The notes: generated by a model not told the origin, from the letters alone. 61,610 nucleotides of DNA, filler included, from Choristocarpus tenellus KU-1152 (GCA_964200185.2; 9 parts of 9 records of this genome joined end to end with filler, not necessarily neighbours in it), one strand, 5' to 3'. Positions 3,178-35,855 are shown, counted from the first letter of the whole stretch. Numbers and translations: made by a program.

Positions 3178-3636
3178 ACAAGCTGTAAATTATCTTTGGT
3201 TTGCTGAGTAAATTCTCCAGTAATGACATCTGAATCAGCACTCGACAAACCACGGATAATATCAACAGTCAAACGAGCTTGTCTTCCAAACAGAAGGAAA
3301 AACAGGTTTTCATGCAACTTTGCCCTGAAAGCTGTGTTACGGGCCAACTGTACGAAAGGCAGTAACGATGCCCAGTTATCCTCAAAACAGAGATTTACGT
3401 TGCTAGTATAGAATGCAACGTAGGACGTGTACTCTCTCTCTAACACAGAATTTTGTGGGAGGTGATACGGTGTGGTTTTGACTTTCTTGTAACCAAGGAC
3501 AGACTGCACCTCTGCAACGATACTGTTTTCAAATTCGATACCCTGATTGAAGTGTAGCAACCCGAGTGTGTCGAAAATTGAAAATGCACGCTCCACCAGC
3601 GTACAAGCAATTATTGCGACCTCATTGCTTGGAACA

Positions 3637-5112: not shown

Positions 5113-8100
5113 TGATCTGTAATGTAGGTAAAGTGTCTACCCCAGAGATACGGTCGCCAATGAGTGATAGCCATAACGACAACAGAACACTCTCTTATTT
5201 ATACCTGAATAGTAATGTTGGGGTCCATTAAATTCTTGCTGATTGAAGTAAGCAACGATACCTAGGTCTTTTGGATTATAGGATCGGTGTTGTGATATAA
5301 AACCTCCAACACCACTCTCATTGCCATCAACATGGACGTCAATCTCTTTGGTAATGTCAGGGAATACGAGAACCAGACTTCGAGTGAGCAATTGTTTTAT
5401 TAAAACAGATTTCAAATCTTATTTAATTTGTTTTTTAAGTATAGAAATATTTTAGTTTTTGTTTTTACTAGTTTCGATCTTTTACTTTTTTATATATTTT
5501 TTGAAACTGTTTTGATTCCTATATTTTTAGTCAACTATTTCTCTTGATTCCTCGAAGTTTTCACCCAAAAGTTCCTGTTCACCACGTGTTCTTGTTCTGC
5601 GTTCGGTATGTTTGGTTAGTGGTTCAACAAAAATATACAACATACATGATTATTTTTTTTTCCACACATATATGCCTCTCAATAATGTTATGTTTTTTTT
5701 GACATTTGTAGATGTGTGTTGGAAAAAGTCAATTCAACATAATATGCCTCTTAACATTCTGATATCAAAAAAGTCCCTTAGAGACTCGAAAGCATGCCGG
5801 AGTTCGAATCTCATTGGTGTCGCCATTATGAATTATGTGATTCTGTACCAGCATGGTTCACTCAGGTAAGGGTGGTGAAGAGAACCACCAGGCAAGACGG
5901 ACCAGACGGAACAAGAAGAACGGTAACCGAGAGGACGAGGTTAGGGTTGGACAAGTGCAAGATTGCTTGTAGAAAAACTGTGAGGACTGACAGACTGAGG
6001 ATCCAGCGAGAAAGGATCATCAGAAAATTCAAGACGTGAGAATGAAGTGAATATTTCATGTTTGATGACTCTGAGTAAAGAGCAATCCCATATCTGTGGA
6101 ACTGGACTTCTTGAAGAGATTCCATGGATTCATTCTCACGGAAGATCCACCACCAGAGTCATCAATCGATATAACGGTATAACGGTATATAACATACAGC
6201 AATATCGGTATAAGTACAGACAAACCTGCTTTTCCACAGAAAGGGTACTGTCTAGATGCACGAATTACTGAAGTGTGACAAAACCTTTGACATGTACACG
6301 TTTTCATCGTGTACTACTACAACACCCAGTAGTAGTGGACATAGTCCCGACATGCCAGAAAAAAGGTAGAATGATTGGTGGCGATGGTCGGGTCATGCGC
6401 AAGAAAAAAAGTAGACTGGCCGGCCTACGGACACGGACTAGTACAATTATCTAGTGGGCGTGATGCAGAAGCTCAAGAGAATGGTAGACCTCGCCAGGTC
6501 AGCAGACATGGACCGGTACAATACCCAGTGGACATGGTTTGGACATTGATTGGTTCAATACCTAGTGGGCCTGGATCAGGACATGTTAAATAATTGTGGG
6601 ACCAGTTGGATCAGTAGACGGGACTATTTTTTTGCAAGCCCAGTGAAAACCCATAGGAAAAGCAAACGGGGTCACCAAGGTTCCTTTTTTGCAATCTCGA
6701 CAAGATCAGGTGCACCTTCTTATTAACAAGAAAACAGACCCTAAAACAATCACCAAACCCATTTTTGGTCGTTAGAGCAGAGAAGGGGTACCTCGAGTGA
6801 CTCTTAATCACATGTTACACCAAAAAAGTATCGAAATGAGTTCCCTTTTGTTAATTCCTATTATATTATTGTCCCCTCTCACATTTTGGAGTGGTGTGAA
6901 GAGAGAAACATATCATACCCATCTTCCAACTAAGGTATACCTTTAGGTGATCTTCGTTGAGAATATGTACTTTTATGGTTCTATATCATATCCATTTCTT
7001 TATTTAACGCATGGAAATTTTCTCGTTATTATGTACTTGTGTAGTGTTTGTGGTGGATAAAGATGTGTCTGCGCATACCATACTTTGGTTCCTAATGGGT
7101 TTGCCCTCTTGGCGTTGTTCTCAATCCTATTATTGGGACTCGTGGGATGGAAACATTGATTCGACGGTCCGGCCTTGTGACGATCGTGGGTCTGCTAACA
7201 TACTTGCTGGTGATTGACATTCGAAAATCTTTGTTGACCGACACGGAGGTAGAGAACTTCTCCACAAAGCTTCCAGAAACGCTATGGTCTCAACCTACGG
7301 TGAGATATGAACTGTCTCTCTCTCTCTCTCTCTCATACACGCATATATATACATATATGTTGTAGGTAACATCCCTTCGTCTTGGACCTTATAATACCAA
7401 TAGGTAAACTTTTTGGAGGTAGTCATGGGATTATCTATTGCCGATTAGGTCTGGTGACCAGATACTCTGGTGACCATACAGGTAGTTGAGCAAGAATTGC
7501 CTAGTATGAAATGGGAGGTAAGGATCAGTGATGACCCCGGGGTGAAAGTTTAGGGCAAATAGTTGGTGATTGCAGTAGCTGCTTGCAAGGGTAAATATGA
7601 TTTCTTTGAATGAGATGATTTGTCCTTGGACCGTTGATTTGTGTCGTTCAGTCGAAGATGAGTAGGGACTTCTGTTCAATTCCAAATGTACTTAATCTCA
7701 TTCTTGAGCAATTCCTGGGTCTACTCTTAACAAGCAATCGAAGTCGGGGATTTGCGAGGACTGGGTGAACAGGAGGGGCTGGCTTACAGGTTGAGTTGTG
7801 AGTGGCAGCTTACACTATGCTACACGCTCTGTCACCTGATCAACACTGCCATTGGGTCGTCCTGACATTCTTGGTGATGATTGATAGTAATTGCGACCAG
7901 GATGGATCATAGTTTCTAAGTACAGGATTCACAGTCTTGATGCGGTAGTCTCGACTCTTTCGATACTAGTGCACTCTCCGGCTTTGTTAATACAGTTTCA
8001 AGACTCGTTTGATGATCAATTGTCGTTAACTCCACCTCGTCTACAACACAACCCTACCCTATTGCGGAACGATCTTCATCTTTTTAAAGGGAAGAGAGTG

Positions 8101-21936: not shown

Positions 21937-22232
21937 GAGTGAAAGTATCTTAGAGGGTACGAAATTTGCCCTGTTTGTCCGTTTGAGGCTTGGCTTCCCA
22001 TGCGTTTTTTATGACATTTTCCTACTCCGAAATGTTTCGGAGTAGGCAAAACGTACGCGTTATNNNNNNNNNNNNNNNNNNNNNNNNNNNNNNNNNNNNN
22101 NNNNNNNTTAATTAATTAANNNNNNNNNNNNNNNNNNNNNNNNNNNNNNNNNNNNNNNNNNNNATCAAAATCGCAACATTGGATTTTCGCCCCCAGATGG
22201 ACATGACTCTACCCTCTAAGATACTTTGACTC
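21937..22232 (-). mobile_element. MITE family B halves on both sides of a linker (21937-22063 and 22164-22232)
   Basis: GAGTGAAAGTATCTTAGAGGGTAC start and CTCTAAGATACTTTGACTC end; perfect CCTACTCCGAAA-TG-TTTCGGAGTAGG hairpin. The halves may come from different copies. Confidence 0.8.
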
Positions 22233-22706
22233 TGTGATCCATACATGCCCCCAATTCAATCTTGTACTGCAACTCAAGTTCAGCAATGCCGGACCTCAAC
22301 CACAATGGATTCATTTCTGTTCCCAACTCAACAGCCACCAGAGCGAGAGCTATTTGAAGAACTCCAGGGACATGTCTACCGCCAGGCAGAAAATGGATAC
22401 TCACTACCTGTTAGGGACGGGGGGGGGGGTGGAGTGCATAACGAAGGAGAGGAGGAGGACTGGGAAACTGAACAGATCCTCAATGATTTGGATCATGCTA
22501 AGAATTTGAAGAACAACTTGTGGTGAGATAGGCGATGAGATCATTCCAAGATTGAAGGGTAGGGGACATGATCCGAGGACTGATACTTAGAACAACAGGA
22601 TCGCTTTGTATCTACAACCTTCCCTAGAGTTGTGGCAATTTTCCCAGAGAGGACATGATGTGAGTTAGTTCTTAGACTAAATACCATCTCTCAAAGTTTG
22701 CAAGAC

Positions 22707-23227
22707 GAGTCAAAGCATTTGAGAGGGTAGGACTTCGTCAATTTGGGGGCCAAAATCCAATGTCCTGATTTTGATGTACTTTTGGCCATTATGTTTGTTA
22801 AGAAGTGTCAATATCCTTGTTCCAGACACACCTTTCATGGTTATATACATTATAGGTAACTGTGATCACATAGAAACCGAAAAAGGGCATAAAATACCTG
22901 TGGGAAGAGTGAAAGTATCTTAGAGGGTACGAGTTTTGCCCTGTTTGTCCATTTGGGGCTTGGCTTCCCATGGGTTTTTTTTTTTTTTTTTTTTACTCCA
23001 AAACATTTCGGAGTAGGTAAAATGTGTACGTTATGACAAGGTGTGTCCGGAACAAGGGTATTGACACTTCCTAAAAAATACGATAGCCAAAATTTCATTA
23101 AAATCGCAACATTGGATTTTGGGCCCAAAATGGACGCAGATCTATCTTCTAAGATACTTTGGCTTGGAAGTCAAGCCCCGAACAGACAAACAGGGCAAAA
23201 CCCCTACCCTCTTAAATGCTATGGGTG
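22707..23227 (+). mobile_element. MITE family A with a nested family B MITE (22907-23165, TSD GGAA)
   Basis: Family A sequence GTGGGAAGCCAAGC is split; GGAA at 22903-22906 and 23166-23169. Confidence 0.88.
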
Positions 23228-23598
23228 TTGGACTACACAGGTGTGCATACGGCTTGGTACATTCACATACCAGTAATGGTGTACTCTGAAATGACTTGCA
23301 CTGCATTGTCCATGTAGAGGTTTACTGCGTTCATCATCGTGCACTAGCTGTATATCCCCATTGTGGATACTGTTTTTTTTTAGGTTTGTCTCCCTGGTTG
23401 AGGGTGATGCCTCCCCCCCTCCCAGCATATTCTCTGAGTACAAAATAATCTGTTTTCTTTGTGTGTTAGTGTGTGGGGGGGTGGAGACAGGGGGTGGGGT
23501 GCTTGTGTATGTGGAACTCAAATCAATGGACCGATAACAAAAGTGAAGCACCCTAAACACGTTCAAACAAAACTGACTGTTTAATTGTGACTGCTTAT

Positions 23599-23850
23599 GA
23601 GTCAAAGTACCTGAGGGTAGAGCTGCGTCCATTCAGGGGCCAAAAACCAATGTTGCGATTTTGATGTAATTTTGGCTATCGTGTTAGGAAGTGTCAATAT
23701 CCTTGTTCTGGACACAACTTTTCATAACGTATAAGTTGTACCTACTCCGAAATGTTTTGGAGTAGGAAACATGACATAAAACCCCCCGAGGGAAGCCAAG
23801 CCTCAAACAGACAAACAGGGCAAACTCGACCCTCTAAGATACTTTCGCTC
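23599..23850 (+). mobile_element. MITE family B, TSD TTAT
   Basis: GAGTCAAAG ... CTTTCGCTC flanked by TTAT at 23595-23598 and 23851-23854. Confidence 0.9.
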
Positions 23851-24421
23851 TTATCCCCACCTGCAAAAGGGTTAATAACTTACCAACAGAACTAGCATTT
23901 AAATAGAGTGTATGTTTAACTCAGTAGGAATCCTGCCTCCCTTGTATCCCAATCGCCATCTCCTATCAAGACTAAAGAAGACATGTAGACCCAGATTGAG
24001 GTTTTCATACTTAGGGGCATTTGGCATAGGTATTGCCTGCTTTCATGAGCTTGACTGGTCTGAATCGCTCAATCTCGATAAACTGATCTAGCAATCAAAC
24101 ATATACTGCAAGCTCGCTGAGGGGAGAGTTCACTGTTTCTGCAGACTGACTGTGGTTACAGCGACTGTAATTTTTTCTACTTGTCTAGACTTGACCATAG
24201 AATCGAGCAACGAGCGCTACTATTGACCTGAGGGGTGGAGTACAACAGCAAAGAGTTCACTGGACCAGAATTATGCACATCCAGGAGTAGGATACCAGCA
24301 GGACAGTATGTGTGATTGACCAGCATAACATCAGGGAGCATAGCTGGTGAGAGGTGACGAAGGGAAGCCTGCACAAAGGGATGGGTCTACAGGAGGGAAC
24401 CAATGGCCAATGGTTGAAACA

Positions 24422-26134
24422 CTCCCTCTGTCCCATAGGTCTGAGCCGTTAAGTTGTAGCTCTTCAGGATGAGCTCCGATTACAAAACAAACCTTTTTGT
24501 TAGATTCCTTGGAATATTTTACACTAAAAAACTATGTCTCGCCTTTATTCAACACCGTCAAACCACCAATCCAGGCCCGCCGCGGAGGCCGCTCGGTCTA
24601 CTTTGACTGATCTAGCCAACCTGCCCTCCCACTGCCTTTTTTTGGTTTTGGTGTGCTCTACCTCGAAATCGCTTCCCCCCGGCGCCCTTAGCACCTTATT
24701 GTACGTCTTGAACAGACTCTGCCACTCCCTCTCAAGTGTGTCTGTGTTGTACACGTGGAGCGCATGCTTCAAACCCTCTATACAATTTCATCATCGGTGC
24801 CGCAACGCTCTGGCCAAACCCTGCTCTTCAGAGATGCAACAAACCCTAAATCATTGATGTTGAGGTCCGGTGACTATGCTGGCTGCATCACGAGCTTAAT
24901 GTTCCATCCCTCCTCTCTGCTGCATTCAGCTTCTACACCGTGCCCTTGCCTGTATGCGGAGTCACACCTTCCTGGTGTAGGGATGCCCCCCCCGATTCCA
25001 GCCATGGCATTTTTTCCTTGATCACTGGTAACAGCATCTGCTCCATGTACCACTCATCATTGACGATGATGTCGACCTTGTACTCCTCACCCTTCATGTG
25101 CCGCACTGTACTCCATTGCACCTCCTTCGTGACACAAACCTACCAGATCCCGACCTTGCCATTGAAATCATGGGAAGGATCCGGGTGAAAAACGGTGGAG
25201 ATGAACATCGCTTTGGGAATGTGCCTCTTGTGCTGCACCTTGATTGAGCTCACTTTTTCCTCCCCTGGGAACATGTGCACCATCGTGTGGTCACAGACGA
25301 GGTAGAACCACGCCTTGTCAATGTAAATGGTGTTGAGGCCAGTCCTTTAGATTTTACGGTTGCGGGAGATCTAGTCAAGGATGAAGTCCACCCTGTTTTT
25401 CTTGTGAGAAAACGAAAGGCTAGGGGTGACACGCCGCTGAACCCTTGTTGCCCCTATGGCTTCAAGCCAGCGATGAAGCTTTGAGGTACCGACTGTGAGG
25501 CCTGCTTCAAAAAAAAAAACTTGGCGGAAAGTTGGTCGATAGTCAAACTGTGATTGATGGTGTTGATTTCCCGGATCTTCGCTTGTTTTGTTGGCGTAAA
25601 ATCCGACAACGGCTGTCCAGCTCATGCTTGTGATTTCAGGAGACGGTATTCCCCCTGTCTAACTGTTCCTTGACGCGCGCCCACAACTGTCTAGGGTGTC
25701 TCTCTCCTACTCCATACTCTTTCGCCAATTTAGGCCCCACACTCCACAGGAGCCTCCTGTGACCTGGAGGATGAGCCAATGTGTAACGCAGACAAGTGTG
25801 ATCCGACCTTCCTCGGTCAGCTCGTAGTTCTTTCCCGAGATGGTGGACTTCAAGCCGGGGACTACAGGCTGTGGCGGCTCGCCATGGGGATTGTGAGAGT
25901 GTTGTGTGGTTCCACGCTGCAGAAGGAACATTAAAAAAATGATAAGAAAAAGCCCCATTCTGTGTTCCATTCTTTCGGAACTATTTTAGAACATAATTCT
26001 TCATAGAATTTATTTGAAATTTAGTTTTTTGATGTAAAATTTCCAGGGAGCTCAACGCAAAAGTCTGTTTTTGTAATCGGAGATCATCCCGAAGAGCTCC
26101 AACTTTGTGATCCAGACATATGGGACAGAGGGAG
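24422..26134 (-). mobile_element. Full-length (1713 bp) but inactivated plant-type mariner (DD39D/GT, Stowaway-like ends)
   Basis: About 80-bp imperfect TIRs starting CTCCCTCTGTCCCATA; TA on the right, CA on the left. Transposase motifs IDKAWFYL, KVQHKRHIPKAMFI, FNGKVGIW, GVTPHTGKG, SPDLNINDLGF with stops and frameshifts. Confidence 0.92.
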
Positions 26135-27599
26135 TACCATATTGCATGCAATTCTTCACAAACGAGAAGTTGCTAATGCACTTTGAGCAAATGGCGCCTA
26201 CTTACAAGTATTATATGAGGAGATCCTGCACTCATAGAATCTAAGGGGTCACCAGAACTAATATCAAGAATACAACATAAGCAAGCAACTTGAGGATCTT
26301 GGTGCGGGAGATGTTGAAACACCAGTGAAGGCACTGAGGAGCAGATGCTAAATGCTCGAAGATATGATCAAACTTTTCACATGGGGAAGGTTGAAATCCA
26401 ATTGAATACACTGGCCAAGATGGGCAATGCACCAACTGTGTGAGACTGGATGCGTCTTGGGGAAAAGACAGTTGAGAACTACATGAACGGCAGTCACCTG
26501 GACGGAGTTTTCTGTCTCAATCTGGGGAGGTAATTTAAAGCTGTCAACCTGGACAAACATATTATACAAGGTGATCTTTGTTGGATTATGGCCAGCGGAA
26601 TTTCAAGGACCAAGTGCTTGGGGAGGTGAAGTGACGCCCTGAGATTTAAAAAAAAAGGATCCTAATGATGTGTTTGGTACCCTCTCAACCAAGCTGTTAA
26701 TACTGTACTTATTTCTCTTTGAGTGCACCATGGGATTTCGGTATATGTGTAGCAGGTCTGATGTGCCATAAAGGACGAGGCATGTCTTTCAATGGGTGCA
26801 CAAGGATGATAGCATAGTAGGATGGGAGATATCTGGGTATATGATGCAATGATGCCTCGAGGATCCATTTCCCACTTTCATGCAATGCCTGCGAACAGTA
26901 GGGCCACAAAGGTAACTGTGTGTAAATCAAGGATGGTAGCAATACCTCACTGGCAGCACCAGCAGCAACAACAGCAACAGCATTGTGGTGTTCTGGTCAG
27001 GGAAGACAATGCTGGGCATTGTGATAGATCCAAGCTGAGACTATCTTGTGGTGTTTTATCGGGAAAGTTTTGCTGAGAGGGCAGATCAAACCATTAAGAT
27101 GCAATCTAAGGCGTTCGCAGTCATCAAAGGCAGGAGGTTCCTACTCTGAGGGTATTTTGAAAGGGAGGGTGCTTCTGAGCCAAAGTACTTGGAGTTAGGC
27201 AAGGTTCTATATTAAGGATTCCTAGAAATGACCAAAGAGTCCTATTTGCACAACTACGGAAAGGGTCCTTATTGAATTGTGGTGTCATTTTATGATTAGA
27301 AAGAAAGAAACCAACTTTTATTGGACACAACCGTGCACATAGAGGACGAAATAGGTATTAAATGTATCATAATGTTTGAAAGCTCCATCCTCAAATAGAT
27401 TGGGAGGAGTGCAAAGTTTGAGATGGTGGGCTGTGAGGACTGTGGAGGATCACCAGTGCAAAGTTGATCGAGTCAAATTTGACGAGATTCAAAAACCTCA
27501 TGAAATTATCAAAGCAGGTGTTTATTGGGACGTCTAGGACGAAGGCCCCTCATCCCATTATCGCCCGTTAGTCCCATTTCTTCAGTCCAGAAGTCTGTC

Positions 27600-28800: not shown

Positions 28801-31036
28801 GTCTACATAAATAACCCATAAAATATGAACACATGAAAATATCTGACTTCTTCATCAAGGCTGCAGAAGTTATACTACATTTATTCCAAGCAGAGGAAGT
28901 AGGACACAAGATACAAGTAGGGTAAATGGTAAATGGTAAATGGTAAATAGGGAGGCATGGTCATGATGCAGCCGCCACAAGCATCCAGAAATTATTACCT
29001 GACTGGCGATAGAAAAAAAGTTCCAACATGGCCAAGTCCAGGGCATTCAATTCTCAACATGACTGGGGCCATCGGCTGGCAATATACAACCAAGTTCGAA
29101 CATGACTGAGTCCATCGTTATCGACAATTTCGATGCGGCCAACAGTGGATATGGTAATTGCCTGACCTGGTGAAAAGCTGATATTTTTTCGCCCCACAAA
29201 CTGTCAAAGTGACGTAAGCAGAGAAATGTGTCAATAATGATGGGCGATGGCCACCCCCACACCATTCAAGAGGTCACAATAACTCCCAAACTAGCCCTCC
29301 ACATGATGCATGAACCTGTGGCGCTTAAGATCCTGACTGTGGCAGTCCTGCCTGGCGCTGATGAAGTATTCAAAGCTGCTATCAAGATCATTCAGGATTT
29401 CCTGAGGCTGGCTTTACAGCACAAGCTTGTCCAGTCTGCCCATAGGTGCTAGCTTCGCCCGCAGTCAGCCTGACTGCATCAGATCAACTTGAGTGTGGCA
29501 AACATGACTGAACATATGAGGTAGCCTCTGGCTGATGTCATTGCTATACCACAGCCCCTATGCTGGACCCAACTCCAGGAGGAGCAGTGTCAGGATAGCG
29601 CCAACTATGAGGCTTCGCCCCAGCAAATACATGTGGCTGGTGTAATTCAGGATGCATGTTTTCATAACAAGCATAAAGACATTTTTACGAGTCCAATAAA
29701 TGAACCTCCAACCATTAAGTAGCATAAAACAGGTGGGGCAATGCCTGTCAAGATCAGGTCACAAAATTACAAACCTGAACGTCAGATCTTCTGGCTGGCT
29801 GGTTCATGGAGTTGCTAGTGATGATGCAGGTGTTGATCTGTTGAGGAGACATACTATCTCGATGAAGGGATGTCCATCCAGTGGCCGTCTGGAGTATGAC
29901 AAATATGTCGAACTGCCATCAACATATAATAATTCAGGGGGTATAACAATTGGGCAGAGTGGCTCTTGTGAGTGGGGTGAAGGAAGATTGCATCCGGCCT
30001 TCTCTGGAGGTAGTTGTGGCAGAGTTTCTGTAGGAGCTGCAAACTGCCCATGGGGAACTTCGTAAGCAGGTGCTGGATTGAGTGGAGCCCGGCAGTACGA
30101 AGCAGAGTATTACAGTAAGCAAGCACATAATCCTACTTTCTATTTTGTAGGTGGTGTTGTAATTGAATCAAGGTTTTGGAAGAGAGATACCGTGCTAAAT
30201 CATGTGAGCAATTTGACTGGGCCCTATTTTGATGGTCACCAAAGAGACCCTATTACATGTATCAGGTAGAACATATTATTTCTGGAGCACTGAGAAAAGT
30301 GTATATTTCGCAACTGTATTCTATTGCAGAGAAATATGACATCGTAATGGACATGGAGGAACAGTTCCCATACATATGTAGAGAATCACGGCAAGTTTGA
30401 ATTGGCTGCCATCATGGATCCGTGTTGGGTAGGTAGGGGAAAGGTATGAGATGTTGGTATACTGGCTTGGTGTTGAGGATAAGAGGACGTAGAAACCATA
30501 CTTTTCATTCTGAAAGGTGCCCCTGTGTGCTCGAGGAAAAGGTTGTAGAGGCTGAAGCTGCAAGAAAGATTGCATCAGGCTATTCAACTTCCTTGTAAGA
30601 CTGATATTTGAGCCGAGTCTTACTTTCCTTGTCAATCCTTTTAGAGAAAATCAAAATTTTAGCAGAGCAAATCTAGCATAATTTATAACCTCTATTAAGT
30701 CTTTTTCTTTTTATCTACTCAACAGTTTGAACTGACATAATTGTAACATCCGATTGTAATAAAAATATAAAACTATTTAATTAGAAGATGAATAAACCAA
30801 GAAAGAACTATAAATCAAAACTAGCCAAACAGTACAAACTGTTTTTGTATTTTCTCTTAAAACTCCTTTATATAATCAAGACCAATACTCAGATAAATTA
30901 TTATGGGTCAAACATGTCCAATCCCAAAACACAATACTGGTACTCCACTTAACTTATAGTAGCTTCTTAATATCTCTTCTAAGAGCAACTAGAAATAAAA
31001 ATGTTACGCCAACTGCGGCCAAATTTTTATACTCAC

Positions 31037-31108
31037 TTGTCAGAAATTTTTTGTTACGTCAATGACTTTTTTAAGGAATTAGATGCTAAGACAAATTCTA
31101 ACAAAAAA
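31037..31108 (+). pseudogene. IS982-family transposase N-terminal fragment (partial second copy at 33855-33888)
   Basis: LSEIFCYVNDFFKELDAK resembles the IS982 EIFCxVDDFxK start. Confidence 0.65.
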
Positions 31109-31712
31109 TTTCTGTAAAATCTATTTTCATAGGTTATTTTAGTATTTTGATAAAATGTCAGGAAAAAATATTGTTGCGTACAAATATAGAGTATTTTTTA
31201 ATAATATATCAAATAATAAGATCCATAATATTTTTACAATGCAATTCTGTGCAACTACAGTTATTTCATCAGCAATAATTTCACTATCAAATTTACTTGT
31301 TAAATAGAGGCTAATTTCACCATTTGCAAGTTTTATGGCGCTGCTAAGTTCATTTTGCCAATCTTGTAATGATTGATTTGGGATGGTATAAAGAAGAAGC
31401 TAGGAGTTTACAGGGTTTGAAAAAAAAATAGTGTTGAGTATCAGTTACTTCAATTACTAATGGATTTTCTTTATTATCTCTTTTTTCAAACCACTCAAGT
31501 GCGGTTTTTTGTCTAAAATCTGCTTTTAACAACATTTATGCAACATAAACGGCTTTTTGAACGTAAAACATTAATAATTAATAAAAATAACAATTTATTT
31601 TAACTTAGATTTTAATTCTTTAACGTTAAAAATTAACTCAATTCTTGCGAAGCAAAAAGCTAAGCAAGTGGCAAAATTACTCAGGATGGAAAGACCTGAT
31701 TATTTTTATCTA

Positions 31713-31787
31713 AATTGAAATATATCCACGATCCCCCAAAATTTTACCAAACATGCCCTTTATCATTAACTTTAATTGTTTCCTATA
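31713..31787 (-). pseudogene. IS982-family transposase fragment (catalytic GDxGYIS motif)
   Basis: YRKQLKLMIKGMFGKILGDRGYIS. Confidence 0.8.
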
Positions 31788-31862
31788 AGGTAGATCAATC
31801 CATAAAGATTCATCAACAAAAGATCAATGGTTAAGCTTTATGTTGCATTGTCATGAACAGAC

Positions 31863-31940
31863 AGGGAGACAGCTGCTATTATTTACACCCTGATTGAAAC
31901 TGCAAAACTCAACAATATCAATCCTGTTAAATATTTGCTA
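31863..31940 (+). pseudogene. IS66-family TnpC C-terminal fragment
   Basis: TAAIIYTLIETAKLNNINPVKYL matches the IS66 YSLIETAKLNGIDPxxYL motif. Confidence 0.88.
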
Positions 31941-32487
31941 TGAACGTTTATTTCTTGTGCTAGCGAAGCTAGTGCGCTTTTTCTTTTTTTATTGATCACT
32001 TTTTTATCTTCTAATTCTAACAAATGATTCTTCATATTTTTTCAATGTTAAATATTTACAAACTATATGTACAAGACTTGATAATTTTGAAAATATTTTA
32101 TCTATTGCAAATCTAAATATATAAAAATTGTCGGAGTTTCGCATAATTACAGCTATAAAAAACTCAGAAAATGTGATTTTATAATTACTCTTTCTGAAGA
32201 TCTCAGAGAAAATTTAATTAATCACAATATTTTTACAAAAGAATATCATAACTCAACACTATTTTTTCTTCAAACATTGGCATCATTGGAACTAGGATGT
32301 GATTTGGTCTCATTAGCAAGAAAGTATAAAGAAATTATTAAAACCTGAATTCAACTCTCCTACGGTTTTTAAGTAATTAGGGATAAATATCACAAAAAAA
32401 TAAAAATTTGCATTATCTTTTAGGGTTTATTGCTTCTATTTTTGCTACAATATTTTTATATTCTTATGTTTTCCTTTAGTAATTTTA

Positions 32488-32731
32488 ATAGCCATAATCT
32501 CTCCTTTGTTATTAATTATTAAATGTAATTTGAATCCTAAAAAATATAAAAATCACTCAGTAACAATATATATATATTTTTTTTACCATATATATTATTA
32601 TATATATTTAAAGCTTTCATATAATGATAAATTTTGAAATCAAATATATCATTAATAATAAGGAAGTATTCAAATTTAGCCATAATCTCTCCTTTGTTAT
32701 TAATTATTAAATGTAATTTGAATCCTAAAAA
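32488..32731 (-). pseudogene. Two direct copies (32488-32543, 32677-32731) of an IS982 transposase fragment
   Basis: About 55-bp repeat encoding FLGFKLHLIINNKGEIMA (IS982 GFKLHLxIN motif). Confidence 0.85.
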
Positions 32732-32790
32732 GAGCAAAATGTAGCAAATTCTGCTAAAAAATATACAAATACAGCGTACCACAAAATTTT

Positions 32791-32877
32791 AAAAGACTTA
32801 CGATTATTTACTGGTATCAGAAAAAATATGAAGAATCATTTGTTAGAATTAGAAGATAAAAAATTATCACGAAAACG
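32791..32877 (+). pseudogene. IS982 transposase fragment. Overlapping copies at 32000-32043(-), 33182-33218(+), 33220-33263(-), 34505-34559(+), 34699-34744(-)
   Basis: KDLRLFTGIRKNMKNHLLELEDKKLSRKR. Confidence 0.88.
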
Positions 32878-33181
32878 TGTAGAATAAAAAAGTAGCTTAT
32901 GAGTTTTAATATAGATTAGCAATAGTTGTTGGATTTTTAATTCTTAATTTATGTGTTGGACTTATACGGGAGGGGGTTATTTAGTGAAACCAAATGTAAA
33001 AAACTTGATTTTACATGTGGAAAAATGTTATTTTACGAAATTTTTCCTCTAAACTAGGAATAATTCCAGCAAATGACTGTTTAATATTTCAGACGGAGAA
33101 ATTACCATAGGGTTGGAACATTCCTTATAATATTTTGAAAAAGAACAATTTAAACTTTCTTCTGTTTCAAAAAATATAAAA

Positions 33182-33263
33182 AATCATTTGTTAGAATTAG
33201 AAGATAAAAAATTATCACTCGTTTTCGTGATAATTTTTTATCTTCTAATTCTAACAAATGATT
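33182..33263. repeat. Perfect 37-bp inverted repeat with an 8-nt loop
   Basis: AATCATTTGTTAGAATTAGAAGATAAAAAATTATCAC, loop TCGTTTTC, then the exact reverse complement. Confidence 0.95.
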
Positions 33264-34347
33264 ATATTTTTTCGCATTTTGAGCAATTTCTTGATCATAA
33301 ATTTTTATCATATACTATTTTCCTATGCAGAAATTACTGAAAATTTCACTGGTTTTATGGTTTAAAATTACACTTGATAATCAATCGCGGAGGGAGGGAT
33401 AGTAAAAGCTTCTTTTAGTCCAGAACAAAATCAACAAAAAAAGATACGCCATGGAGAAGAATAAATTAGAATTAGTCAAAAAGAGCAGGAAACTTAACAT
33501 TATCAGAGCTTTTAGCAATAGTGTTATTTTTTTATTTTATATAAGTCTTAAGTCTTTTATCATATGAAAATTATTCTAATCTTTTTGTTATTTATTTTGA
33601 TGTCTTGTAATTCAACAAAGAGACATAATAAAATTGATGAAAAGTTAGTTTGAAAAAAAAATAGTGTTGAGTTATGATATTCTTTTGTAAAAAATAACAT
33701 AACCCAACATAAAGTGTTTGATGTTATTCAGGATTATAAGGCCAATCATTTACAGGATCTCCTCCCCAAATTCGTCTCCTTGTTTACGTCTTTGCTGTAG
33801 AAGTTTTGAACAATTTATTGGATATAATAAAATCAAAAATAAAGATATTTCAACTTTTTAAAGGAATTAGATGCTAAGACAAATTCTATAACAAATAAAA
33901 ATAATAAACCTGGATGCAAGATAGAGAATAATTTAAAAAGCAACGGTATTTTTGTATTAAGAACAAAAAGAAAAAAATATTATGATTTACTAGTGAATAC
34001 TAATGCTTACTAATAAATATAAGAACATATATTATCATGTTAAAAGTATTTCAGCTTGAAAAATTAATTTTTTAACACGAGTTTCGAATTAGAATCTTAC
34101 AATTCTTGAAACTGTAATAGAGTTTACAGGGTTTGAAAAAAAAATAGTGTTGAGTTATGATATTCTTTTGTAAAAAATAACATAACCCAACATGAAAAAA
34201 TGTATCATAACCTCGCCTTCTGATATTTCATACACTAGATCAGATAGTTTGTGCCATGATCCGTTAGGCAATCCTTGCAGTTGAAAATCGCAGCCCTATA
34301 TCTGATGAACAATCTTCGGCTCAAATTATGGATGATGAAAAAATTGC

Positions 34348-34392
34348 TACGTCTTCCCTTGTTAGATGCTCTGGTAATTTTTTTCTTTTTGC
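34348..34392 (-). pseudogene. IS66-family TnpC fragment upstream of the zinc ribbon
   Basis: AKRKKLPEHLTREDV (RKxLPxHLPRE motif). Confidence 0.75.
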
Positions 34393-34741
34393 CAGTAGAT
34401 ATTCCTTTCAGATAAAGACAAGGTATTACTTCTTTCTCTAGCTGATATTCACTTCTAATTAGGATTTTGCAGATTTTTTCTCTTGATTCAGAATAGTTTT
34501 CATCAAAAGACTTACGATTATTTACTGGTATCAGAAAAAATATGAAGAATCATTTGTTAAAAAACAAACTCAATGGTTGTGGTTTATTGCACTCTGGCTT
34601 GGAGGTTTTATCACTTTTAACCATGGTTAAAAACATAGATTTAATTGCATCTGGAAACCTAAAAAATTATCGAAATTACCTTATTTCCTTGCAAGAACTG
34701 ATAATTTTTTATCTTCTAATTCTAACAAATGATTCTTCATA

Positions 34742-34780
34742 TTTAAATAAGTCATTAAAAACTTCTTTGGAAATATAGCC
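34742..34780 (-). pseudogene. IS982 transposase fragment, second sequence variant
   Basis: GYISKEVFNDLFK. Confidence 0.65.
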
Positions 34781-35075
34781 TTATTGATATCATATATTTT
34801 ATCTATAGGCAAGGAAGATATATTTAAGCGCAGTTTTCTTAATGAGTTCAATTAATTCTTCGTTTATTGAACTAGAAAAACTATTTTCATTACAAATAGT
34901 TTTTAAATTTTTTTTACTATCTTTACAGTAATTTTTTTTTAAATCTTTAAATTGCAGCGTCTTAGAGGAATAATTAATACAAATTTAACTTTTGACTATT
35001 AATTTTTATACCATTATAGGATTTGCTGCATACCAACAAAAGCTCTACTCAAATCTGCTGAGTTATACCAAAAAA

Positions 35076-35142
35076 TGCTTCAGCTTTACCTTCAGCCAAT
35101 CCTTCAGCCAATCCTTCAGCTTTACCTTCAGATTTCAATTTG
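35076..35142 (-). pseudogene. EGKAEG-repeat fragment typical of Rpn / PD-(D/E)XK nuclease-family putative transposase C-termini
   Basis: KLKSEGKAEGLAEGLAEGKAEA (12-bp DNA repeats). Confidence 0.65.
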
Positions 35143-35367
35143 GTCTTTGAGTTTAGTCTGCCTGTGTTTTGTCATATGTCAGTTCGTAGTGGAGTTAGGA
35201 GAGGTGCGCAATCTTCGTTTTGGTCAAGCTTGCACCTTGCTACTATGGATTGGTAGTGCCCTGGGCTCTGGGTGAGTTTCAGTCCCACATAAAGGTTTTC
35301 ATAAATATGCGGTCGAGTTGGCATTTCTTTCTTGCTTTGTTGATCTGATCTGATCTAAGACAACATT

Positions 35368-35855
35368 GACCCAAAGTATCTGGGGGGGGGGGGGGTCTAC
35401 ACCAGAGTGTCCATTTGGGTCANNNNNNNNNNNNNNNNNNNNNNNNNNNNNNNNNNNNNNNNNNNNTTAATTAATTAANNNNNNNNNNNNNNNNNNNNNN
35501 NNNNNNNNNNNNNNNNNNNNNNGATGGATTCTTTAAATACACTTTTCCTTATTTTGGTCCAAATGGACCCCCTGGTGTAGCCCCCCCCCCCCCCTCCCAG
35601 ATACTTTGGGTCAAACCTCTACGAATGAGCCACAACGCAGTGAACGACAAACAGTTCCTCTTTCCCTTTACGGTATGGCTCAAAGTATCTGAGGGGGTAG
35701 GGTTGGCAGCAGTCCACTCAGGGCCCATTTTTCCATGTGGCAATTTTTGGGTGATTTGGTTGCATGCATTCGATGGATAATGCAAGTGCACTTCTCCTGG
35801 TCAGGGCCCAAATGGACACTCTGGTGTAGACCCTCCCTCCCAGATACTTTGAGCT
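35368..35855. mobile_element. MITE family C copies: 35368-35422 (contig end), 35523-35612 (contig start), 35677-35855 (complete)
   Basis: CAAAGTATCT termini and the GTCTACACCAGGGTGTCCATTTGG core. Confidence 0.85.

Follow-up and report, generated by a model that had tools for sequence, protein, structure and literature searches.

The stretch of DNA examined here (the window) comprises 61,610 nucleotides (nt), filler included, from Choristocarpus tenellus KU-1152 (GCA_964200185.2), and consists of nine parts of nine records of this genome joined end to end with filler. Our interest was in an AT-rich block at 30636-35142, which an earlier interpretation made from the DNA alone (the sequence-only reading) had described as a scrambled patchwork of fragments of bacterial mobile elements, of a kind typical of Rickettsiales, lying inside eukaryotic DNA. 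The composition profile bears out a sharp block of this kind within host-type DNA, with a GC content of 0.19-0.32 across approximately 30600-35150 compared with 0.39-0.54 outside it and 0.41-0.54 for the 8.5 kb of left flank. GC climbs again past 35150, in the final 280 nt of the contig piece. As had been claimed, coding scraps lie in both orientations and no gene is intact: an open reading frame (ORF) scan of the block found zero intact genes and a longest ORF of at most 81 amino acids (aa), and the scraps are stop-free, on both strands, and come from the transposase genes of the insertion sequence (IS) families IS982 and IS66. Pieces of bacterial chromosomal genes lie beside them. The features are listed in Table 1.

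The block has 83 stop-free segments of 28 aa or longer, and the translations of all of them were scanned against the NCBIfam and Pfam profiles. Three segments were identified as IS982 transposase (NCBIfam NF033520, E 1.7e-7; Pfam DDE_Tnp_1_3, PF13612, E 1.2e-9). There are at least 12 IS982 pieces, each 44-111 nt long, covering aa 10-35, 41-58, 150-174, 191-210 and 205-240 of the transposase. A blastn search of PLSDB returned two records only, an annotated Aquicella IS982 gene (79% identity) and a plasmid of Ca. Megaira polyxenophila (from Cryptomonas SAG 25.80, 85%), the latter matching the IS66-type piece. Using tblastx and pairwise alignment against the IS982 protein of a Megaira plasmid, we found that the most abundant repeat unit in the block is an internal IS982 coding piece (aa ~211-240) and not an IS end. 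The two profiles, the blastn match and the Megaira alignments together confirm the IS982 scraps of the sequence-only reading. Neither IS982 terminal inverted repeats nor a full transposase ORF is present in the block. A tblastn search of PLSDB with the longest piece gave no match at E<=0.01, and exact searches with a 29-mer (185,579 species genomes) and a 28-mer (JGI metagenomes) of the repeat unit gave zero matches.

The IS66 scrap is equally well grounded, in profile matches to the C-terminus of TnpC (PF13817, E 1.8e-6; NF033517, E 3e-5) and in 84-87% nucleotide identity to the Ca. Megaira polyxenophila plasmid. It comprises only the last ~50 aa of TnpC and is divided into two parts. The cut falls between 31937 and 33708, where exactly 1770 nt intervene and the tail itself neither loses nor gains a base. 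In the Megaira plasmid, which has four copies, the halves run on uninterrupted, as they do in higher-depth contigs of both samples described below (depth 104 and 16). On Megaira plasmid p2 (L003) the four copies of this 114-nt IS66-C-terminus-like unit lie at 3262-3375, 7944-8056, 30070-30183 and 34751-34864. None is annotated, and each adjoins a tyrosine-recombinase gene cluster, as if marking the ends of recombinase-carrying elements.

Three well-supported pieces from chromosomal housekeeping genes are found beside the mobile-element pieces. The first belongs to a gene for a 286-aa protein that is intact between ftsZ and SURF1/hda in three relatives; 31155-31244 has 91% nucleotide identity to CBDBTV010000016.1, 90% to two other Rickettsiaceae metagenome-assembled genomes (MAGs) and 84% to a 1.48-Mb genome. 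The others come from a HemW/HemN-type gene and from a gene for a 584-aa protein. In all, approximately 1.7 kb (38%) of the block could be assigned, of which IS982 makes up approximately 0.8 kb (~18% of the block). The earlier statement that mobile elements dominate the recognisable content thus holds insofar as IS982 accounts for about half of the assigned bases, but it must be tempered by the three housekeeping pieces and by the approximately 60% of the block that has no assignment. A tRNA search found none, and an exact-protein look-up of three ORFs of the window gave no recorded match.

Table 1. Features of the AT-rich block, its junctions and its flank (positions in the window; L numbers are our labels for sequences of relatives used in the alignments, X1 and X2 the two sequencing runs)
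Position	Strand	Feature	Basis
24421..26135	.	1.7-kb element bounded by terminal inverted repeats, with degenerate ORFs	Inverted ends of 114 nt with 75% complementarity
30200..30835		Left host/insert junction	X1 2090-nt contig, depth 16.7, 0 differences; X2 contig 30556-30835
30636..35142	both	AT-rich mosaic of short pieces, Rickettsiaceae-derived	GC profile and piece assignments
30966..31049	-	Weak RecJ-like piece	TIGR00644, E 0.011, profile 162-189
31037..31107	+	IS982 transposase, N-terminal piece	Aligns with Megaira IS982 aa 10-20; 36 nt at 97% shared with 33853-33888
31143..31244	+	In-frame piece of conserved 286-aa Rickettsiaceae chromosomal gene (aa ~229-264)	91% to L008/L017; 90% to L016/L009
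31304..31399	-	HemW/HemN-type radical-SAM gene piece, ~32 aa	NF005133, E 2.4e-5, profile 167-198 of 390; 65% aa identity to MAG hemW region
31404..31439	+	Truncated family 2 copy	100% identical to 34120-34155
31719..31823	-	Weak IS982 DDE-domain piece	PF13612, E 0.011; aligns with Megaira IS982 aa 191-200
31857..31937	+	IS66 TnpC C-terminal piece, half 1	PF13817, NF033517; 87% to Megaira plasmid p2
32000..32043	-	IS982 piece, aa ~221-235, copy 1 of re-used region	100% identical to reference 32820-32863
32230..32275	-	Truncated inverted family 2 copy	98% to 34131-34176
32472..32546	-	IS982 piece, aa 150-174	Score 99 against Megaira IS982; 79% blastn match to Aquicella IS982 gene
32624..32681	+	Piece of 584-aa Rickettsiaceae chromosomal gene	92.7% to L016 4176-4230; sharp ends
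32677..32731	-	IS982 piece, aa 151-168	Exact 55-nt duplicate of 32489-32543
32770..32880	+	Longest IS982 piece, aa ~205-240, reference copy of re-used region	tblastx to Megaira IS982, L005 7862-7948; score 71
33169..33263	33169-33218 +; 33220-33263 -	Head-to-head palindrome of two IS982 pieces	Repeat analysis
33350..33394	+	Diverged IS982 piece, aa 150-164	Alignment score 58
33530..33647	+	ORF piece with lipoprotein-type signal peptide	148 nt identical in another sample contig; LvhB7 E 0.05, weak
33648..33710	+	Family 2 copy, stops exactly at IS66 break	100% identical to 34131-34193
33708..33782	+	IS66 TnpC C-terminal piece, half 2	Contiguous with 31937 in Megaira p2 (L003 3375-3262)
33853..33916	+	IS982 N-terminal piece	64 nt common to a high-depth contig that diverges at both ends
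34120..34193	+	Full 74-nt family 2 repeat, imperfect hairpin, sharp 3' end	Repeat analysis
34505..34559	+	IS982 piece, aa 211-228	100% identical to reference 32791-32845
34684..34780	-	IS982 piece, aa 198-238, with internal deletion	Alignments
34805..35389		Right insert/host junction	X1 585-nt contig, depth 24.5; X2 contig 35067-35388
35074..35131	-	12-nt repeat encoding EGKAEG-type tail	Similar to Megaira Rpn proteins in the low-complexity part that precedes their C-terminal helix

The donor family, judged from these comparisons, is Rickettsiaceae. The Rickettsiales origin suggested earlier is supported by 91-93% nucleotide identity to Rickettsiaceae chromosomal genes and by the profile matches to IS982, IS66 and HemW. 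Megaira is no more than a candidate genus: one mobile-element piece, of IS66 type, has its nearest match on a Megaira plasmid, and the housekeeping pieces are closest to Rickettsiaceae MAGs. When the FtsZ of the closest MAG was used as a query, its best 120 matches were only Rickettsiaceae or Rickettsiales MAG proteins without a genus name. In every Rickettsiaceae relative compared, ftsZ and SURF1 flank the gene of the conserved 284-289-aa protein, to which no Pfam or NCBIfam family corresponds (L008 2931-3791, minus strand; L016 10001-10861; L015 2001-2870), and 49 homologues of it were found, mainly in metagenome and Logan assemblies.

The proposal that the block is a non-colinear patchwork also stood up to comparison, as homology ends sharply and there is no colinearity with the relatives compared. 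Alignments that included the donor flanks showed homology to relatives stopping abruptly at both ends of the chromosomal pieces at 31143-31244 and 32624-32681, with no more than 1-3 nt in common with the adjoining piece. Adjacent pieces come from donor positions that are not adjacent: the piece of the ftsZ-neighbour gene adjoins the HemW piece, and the piece of the 584-aa gene sits between IS982 pieces. Only one further piece was found in approximately 40 kb of the relatives' genome around the first chromosomal piece, which gives no evidence for a single donor neighborhood.

Whether the joins are real was examined with Logan 31-mer contigs of two runs (X1 and X2), which are two samples of the same organism and come from the only study found to contain the stretch. 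The contigs were placed on 30200-35422. Both host junctions are bridged with zero differences in the two samples, and unbranched internal contigs of 218-364 nt cross several joins (for example 31122-31421) at a depth of 20-34 in X1 and 3-9 in X2. The depth of junction and join contigs is near that of the host flank (16.7-24.5 in X1, 4-12 in X2). The joins recur in both samples at roughly the depth of the host, which excludes path errors of the assembler and one-off chimeras as their source. The physical link to host-type DNA that the sequence-only reading described is reproduced at both junctions, and so are internal joins.

Depth is not uniform along the block. Internal contigs of its left part (30806-31421) run at approximately twice the depth of the host flank (33-34 against 16.7 in X1, 8-9 against 4-5 in X2), and another part (32848-33211) is at about the depth of the flank; part of the block may be present twice in the sample. 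Some pieces also occur in other contexts among the sample contigs: 33853-33916 diverges on both sides, 33530-33677 diverges on the left, and 30729-30835 has a 94% copy elsewhere. Intact or rearranged copies of these pieces therefore exist in the sample, and either a resident bacterium or another site of the host genome could carry them.

The internal structure of the block bears on how it might have formed. Short repeat families occur within it in both orientations, a 44-58-nt unit six times and a 74-nt unit (family 2) four times, together with an exact 55-nt direct duplicate (32489 and 32677) and a 36-43-nt pair (31065 and 33853). The six pieces of the first family, 44-55 nt long, sample one 87-nt region of IS982 (reference 32791-32877) with differing end points and in both orientations, and five of the six are 100% identical to the reference copy. 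In a post hoc simulation, in which 14 random pieces were placed on a 1-kb element, six midpoints fell within 40 nt with P ~0.001. The palindrome at 33169-33263 is perfect over 46 bp, has an overlap of 2-3 nt at its join, and its opposite-strand copy starts 13 nt further along the template; it folds at -53.4 kcal/mol (z -15), and its ORF has no homologue among 5.8 billion proteins. This arrangement reads as the signature of a fold-back. The exact 55-nt duplicate has one end point in common with its partner. Overlap at the three joins inspected is 0-3 nt, and most other joins are without a donor reference. The re-used IS982 region, the palindrome, the 55-nt duplicate and the bisected IS66 tail all exceed what simple ligation of random fragments would give. 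The single chaotic end-joining event proposed earlier is too simple, since the re-use of the IS982 region, the palindrome and the bisected tail point to re-copying or to several steps.

We consider it probable that the block represents fragmented Rickettsiaceae DNA captured at a break in a host chromosome by end joining, short template switching or both, with some local re-copying, and that the product is inert. Under this explanation degraded symbiont DNA would have been captured at a nuclear double-strand break, and pieces of approximately 40-150 nt would have been stitched together with overlaps of 0-3 nt by end joining and/or short-range template switching. Some pieces would have been re-copied during or after stitching, which would explain why IS982 pieces recur and how the fold-back palindrome and the 55-nt duplicate arose. 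The pieces would have been drawn from dispersed places in the donor, including chromosomal housekeeping genes and especially the multi-copy IS982 and IS66. The block itself is most likely functionless junk.

Several observations weigh against this explanation. Both runs belong to a single study, and the assembly may itself have been built from them, which makes a shared library-level artefact possible, and the linkage across the junctions is that of 31-mer contigs and not of long reads or polymerase chain reaction (PCR). Only 280 nt of right flank are present, half of them belonging to a very high-copy repeat. Approximately three fifths of the block is the unassigned portion noted above, and colinearity was compared only with relatives at 84-91% identity and not with the true donor. 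The loss-free bisection of the IS66 tail is not predicted by ligation of random fragments. Finally, the join at 33647/33648, between a gene start and a family 2 repeat, is also found in another sample contig. This join was probably inherited from the donor, because it is shared with a contig of different context.

A close relative of capture by end joining is replication-based scrambling, either microhomology-mediated break-induced replication or a process like chromoanasynthesis, in which a polymerase at a broken host end copies symbiont templates and switches template and strand many times, with occasional re-copying of one template and occasional return to the point of departure. Much of what was described above suits it, namely six uses of one IS982 region with shifted ends in both orientations, a fold-back with a small central overlap, a duplicate with a common end point, an IS66 tail that was left and rejoined at the same base, and joins that are blunt or of 1-3 nt. 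We regard it as possible but unlikely in its pure form, as few joins are open to inspection, the donor sequence of most pieces is lacking, ligation followed by local duplication yields similar products, and such a repair route is conjectural for this host. It is rather improbable that the mosaic was already present in the donor, as a decayed graveyard of IS elements, miniature inverted-repeat transposable elements (MITEs) and pseudogenes of a symbiont chromosome or plasmid that was transferred as one colinear piece. Such an origin would account for the 1770-nt interruption of the IS66 tail, which involves neither duplication nor loss and ends at the sharp terminus of family 2, like the precise insertion of a mobile element. 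It would also fit the gene start/family 2 join that is common to another locus in the sample, and Megaira plasmids are crowded with IS remnants. It does not readily explain why IS pieces have in-frame pieces of 58-102 nt between them, derived from conserved chromosomal genes whose integrity and synteny are preserved in every relative examined, and six overlapping 44-55-nt pieces of one IS982 region are unlike IS decay. The absence of the repeat-unit 28-29-mers from the species genomes and JGI metagenomes searched, and of any homologue of the palindrome ORF from the protein collection, also counts against it.

That the block is an artefact, whether from a molecule that became chimeric during amplification or library construction or from host and symbiont contigs wrongly joined, we consider very unlikely. 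Displacement amplification typically yields chimeras with fold-back inversions, the contig piece stops 280 nt past the block in a high-copy repeat, and the two runs share their study; but the same junctions and internal joins occur in two samples, in unbranched contigs of 218-2090 nt and at host-like depth, and this recurrence of the same joins makes random chimeras unlikely. We give almost no credence to a functional archive, that is, a locus collecting scraps of symbionts and mobile elements that is transcribed into small RNAs in the manner of a PIWI-interacting RNA (piRNA) cluster or a hairpin RNA. The corresponding picture of a hot spot that repeatedly captures symbiont scraps, especially of active insertion sequences, and is transcribed together with its 46-bp hairpin would be analogous to piRNA clusters with viral fragments, and is hardly to be expected either. 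Mobile-element pieces are over-represented and occur in both orientations, and the palindrome would form a perfect 46-bp hairpin if transcribed. Housekeeping pieces are nevertheless present as well, no RNA run was found to contain the stretch, the sequence suggests no promoter or processing signal, and repair junk explains every feature.

Capture of shredded symbiont DNA has several known counterparts. Wolbachia insertions occur as short disabled fragments co-assembled with DNA of the nematode Dictyocaulus (PMC4046930), and the nuclear genome of Volvox carteri contains a rickettsial region of roughly 9 kb (PMC4324946). The present block resembles the nuclear Wolbachia transfers (nuwts) and the Volvox region in that host DNA adjoins DNA from an intracellular alphaproteobacterium, the latter being non-functional and co-assembled with repeats of the host. 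The Volvox region, however, keeps four genes in recognisable order whereas order and strand are scrambled here, and nuwts are usually scored at 100 nt or more whereas the units here are 40-150 nt long and single pieces are re-used several times. Organelle DNA is known to form concatenated mosaic insertions with end-joining signatures (PMC6215612). Like such mosaic insertions of mitochondrial (numt) or plastid (nupt) DNA, the block concatenates non-adjacent donor fragments at one site, presumably nuclear; unlike them, it has a bacterial symbiont as donor, contains pieces that are far more numerous and far shorter, and includes a repeatedly re-copied template region and a fold-back palindrome. 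In comparison with the IS982 and IS66 elements of Rickettsiales, the transposase families match but there is no intact transposase, terminal inverted repeat or target duplication. Shattered transgene arrays formed after biolistic or other DNA delivery, and chromoanasynthesis, also contain tens of short foreign pieces whose order and orientation are random, joined at microhomologies and accompanied by templated duplications. They share with the block the many very short and scrambled foreign pieces, and differ in being experimental or pathological where this event is natural with a symbiont donor.

The locus is therefore a member of the known class of symbiont-to-host DNA transfer and not a new kind of system; its finer shredding and the re-use of template set it apart. 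Dozens of pieces below 150 nt represent a granularity that is rarely resolved for transfers from Rickettsiaceae into host-like DNA. Mosaics of this kind fall below the usual lateral-transfer cut-off of at least 100 nt, so symbiont transfers may be under-counted, and they are open to being mistaken for contamination. If the donor genome were recovered, the block would be a clean natural record of how foreign DNA is used in break repair by a eukaryote. The block shows no sign of function, and its biological consequence is probably nil.

The minor pieces include several that were less secure. The family 2 hairpin folds no better than shuffled sequence (z -1.4), and the repeat could not be matched to any IS end. 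One conjecture is that the 1770-nt interruption of the IS66 tail might be an element of IS200/IS605 type. The Rpn-like EGKAEG tail of the sequence-only reading was retained in part: the repeat exists and resembles the tail of Megaira Rpn proteins, but the Pfam and NCBIfam scans gave no match to Rpn models and no PD-(D/E)XK nuclease domain, and an Rpn origin is plausible. The suggested DUF2474-like peptide at 34571 was not recovered, as the segment 34487-34627 has no Pfam match at E<=0.05. Matches to RecJ (E 0.011) and lipoamide dehydrogenase (E 0.0012) were set aside as too weak given the 73 segments tested. A guess that the 104-aa stop-free stretch at 34238-34549 (minus strand) is IS256-like was dropped, with no Pfam or NCBIfam match and none among 1.8 billion representatives. 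At 33181-33264 Rfam gave matches to MIR2275 and MIR1507 on both strands, with scores under the gathering threshold; the perfect palindrome accounts for them.

The flanks look eukaryotic, because they have no long ORFs and contain diverged short repeats, a very high-copy terminal repeat and an element with inverted repeats at its ends. In 8.5 kb of the left flank no ORF exceeds 137 aa, and a Pfam scan of ten flank ORFs, including those of the 1.7-kb element at 24421-26135, gave no match. This element is probably what had earlier been called a mariner. A host repeat of 55-130 nt, MITE-like in appearance, is clustered at 22164-23824, where at least five copies with 78-86% identity lie in both orientations. 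On the other side of the block, the repeat at 35275-35422, which includes 13 consecutive G, reaches a summed k-mer depth of approximately 1e5 in X1 compared with approximately 17 for unique flank (roughly 6000-fold), and the contig piece ends there.

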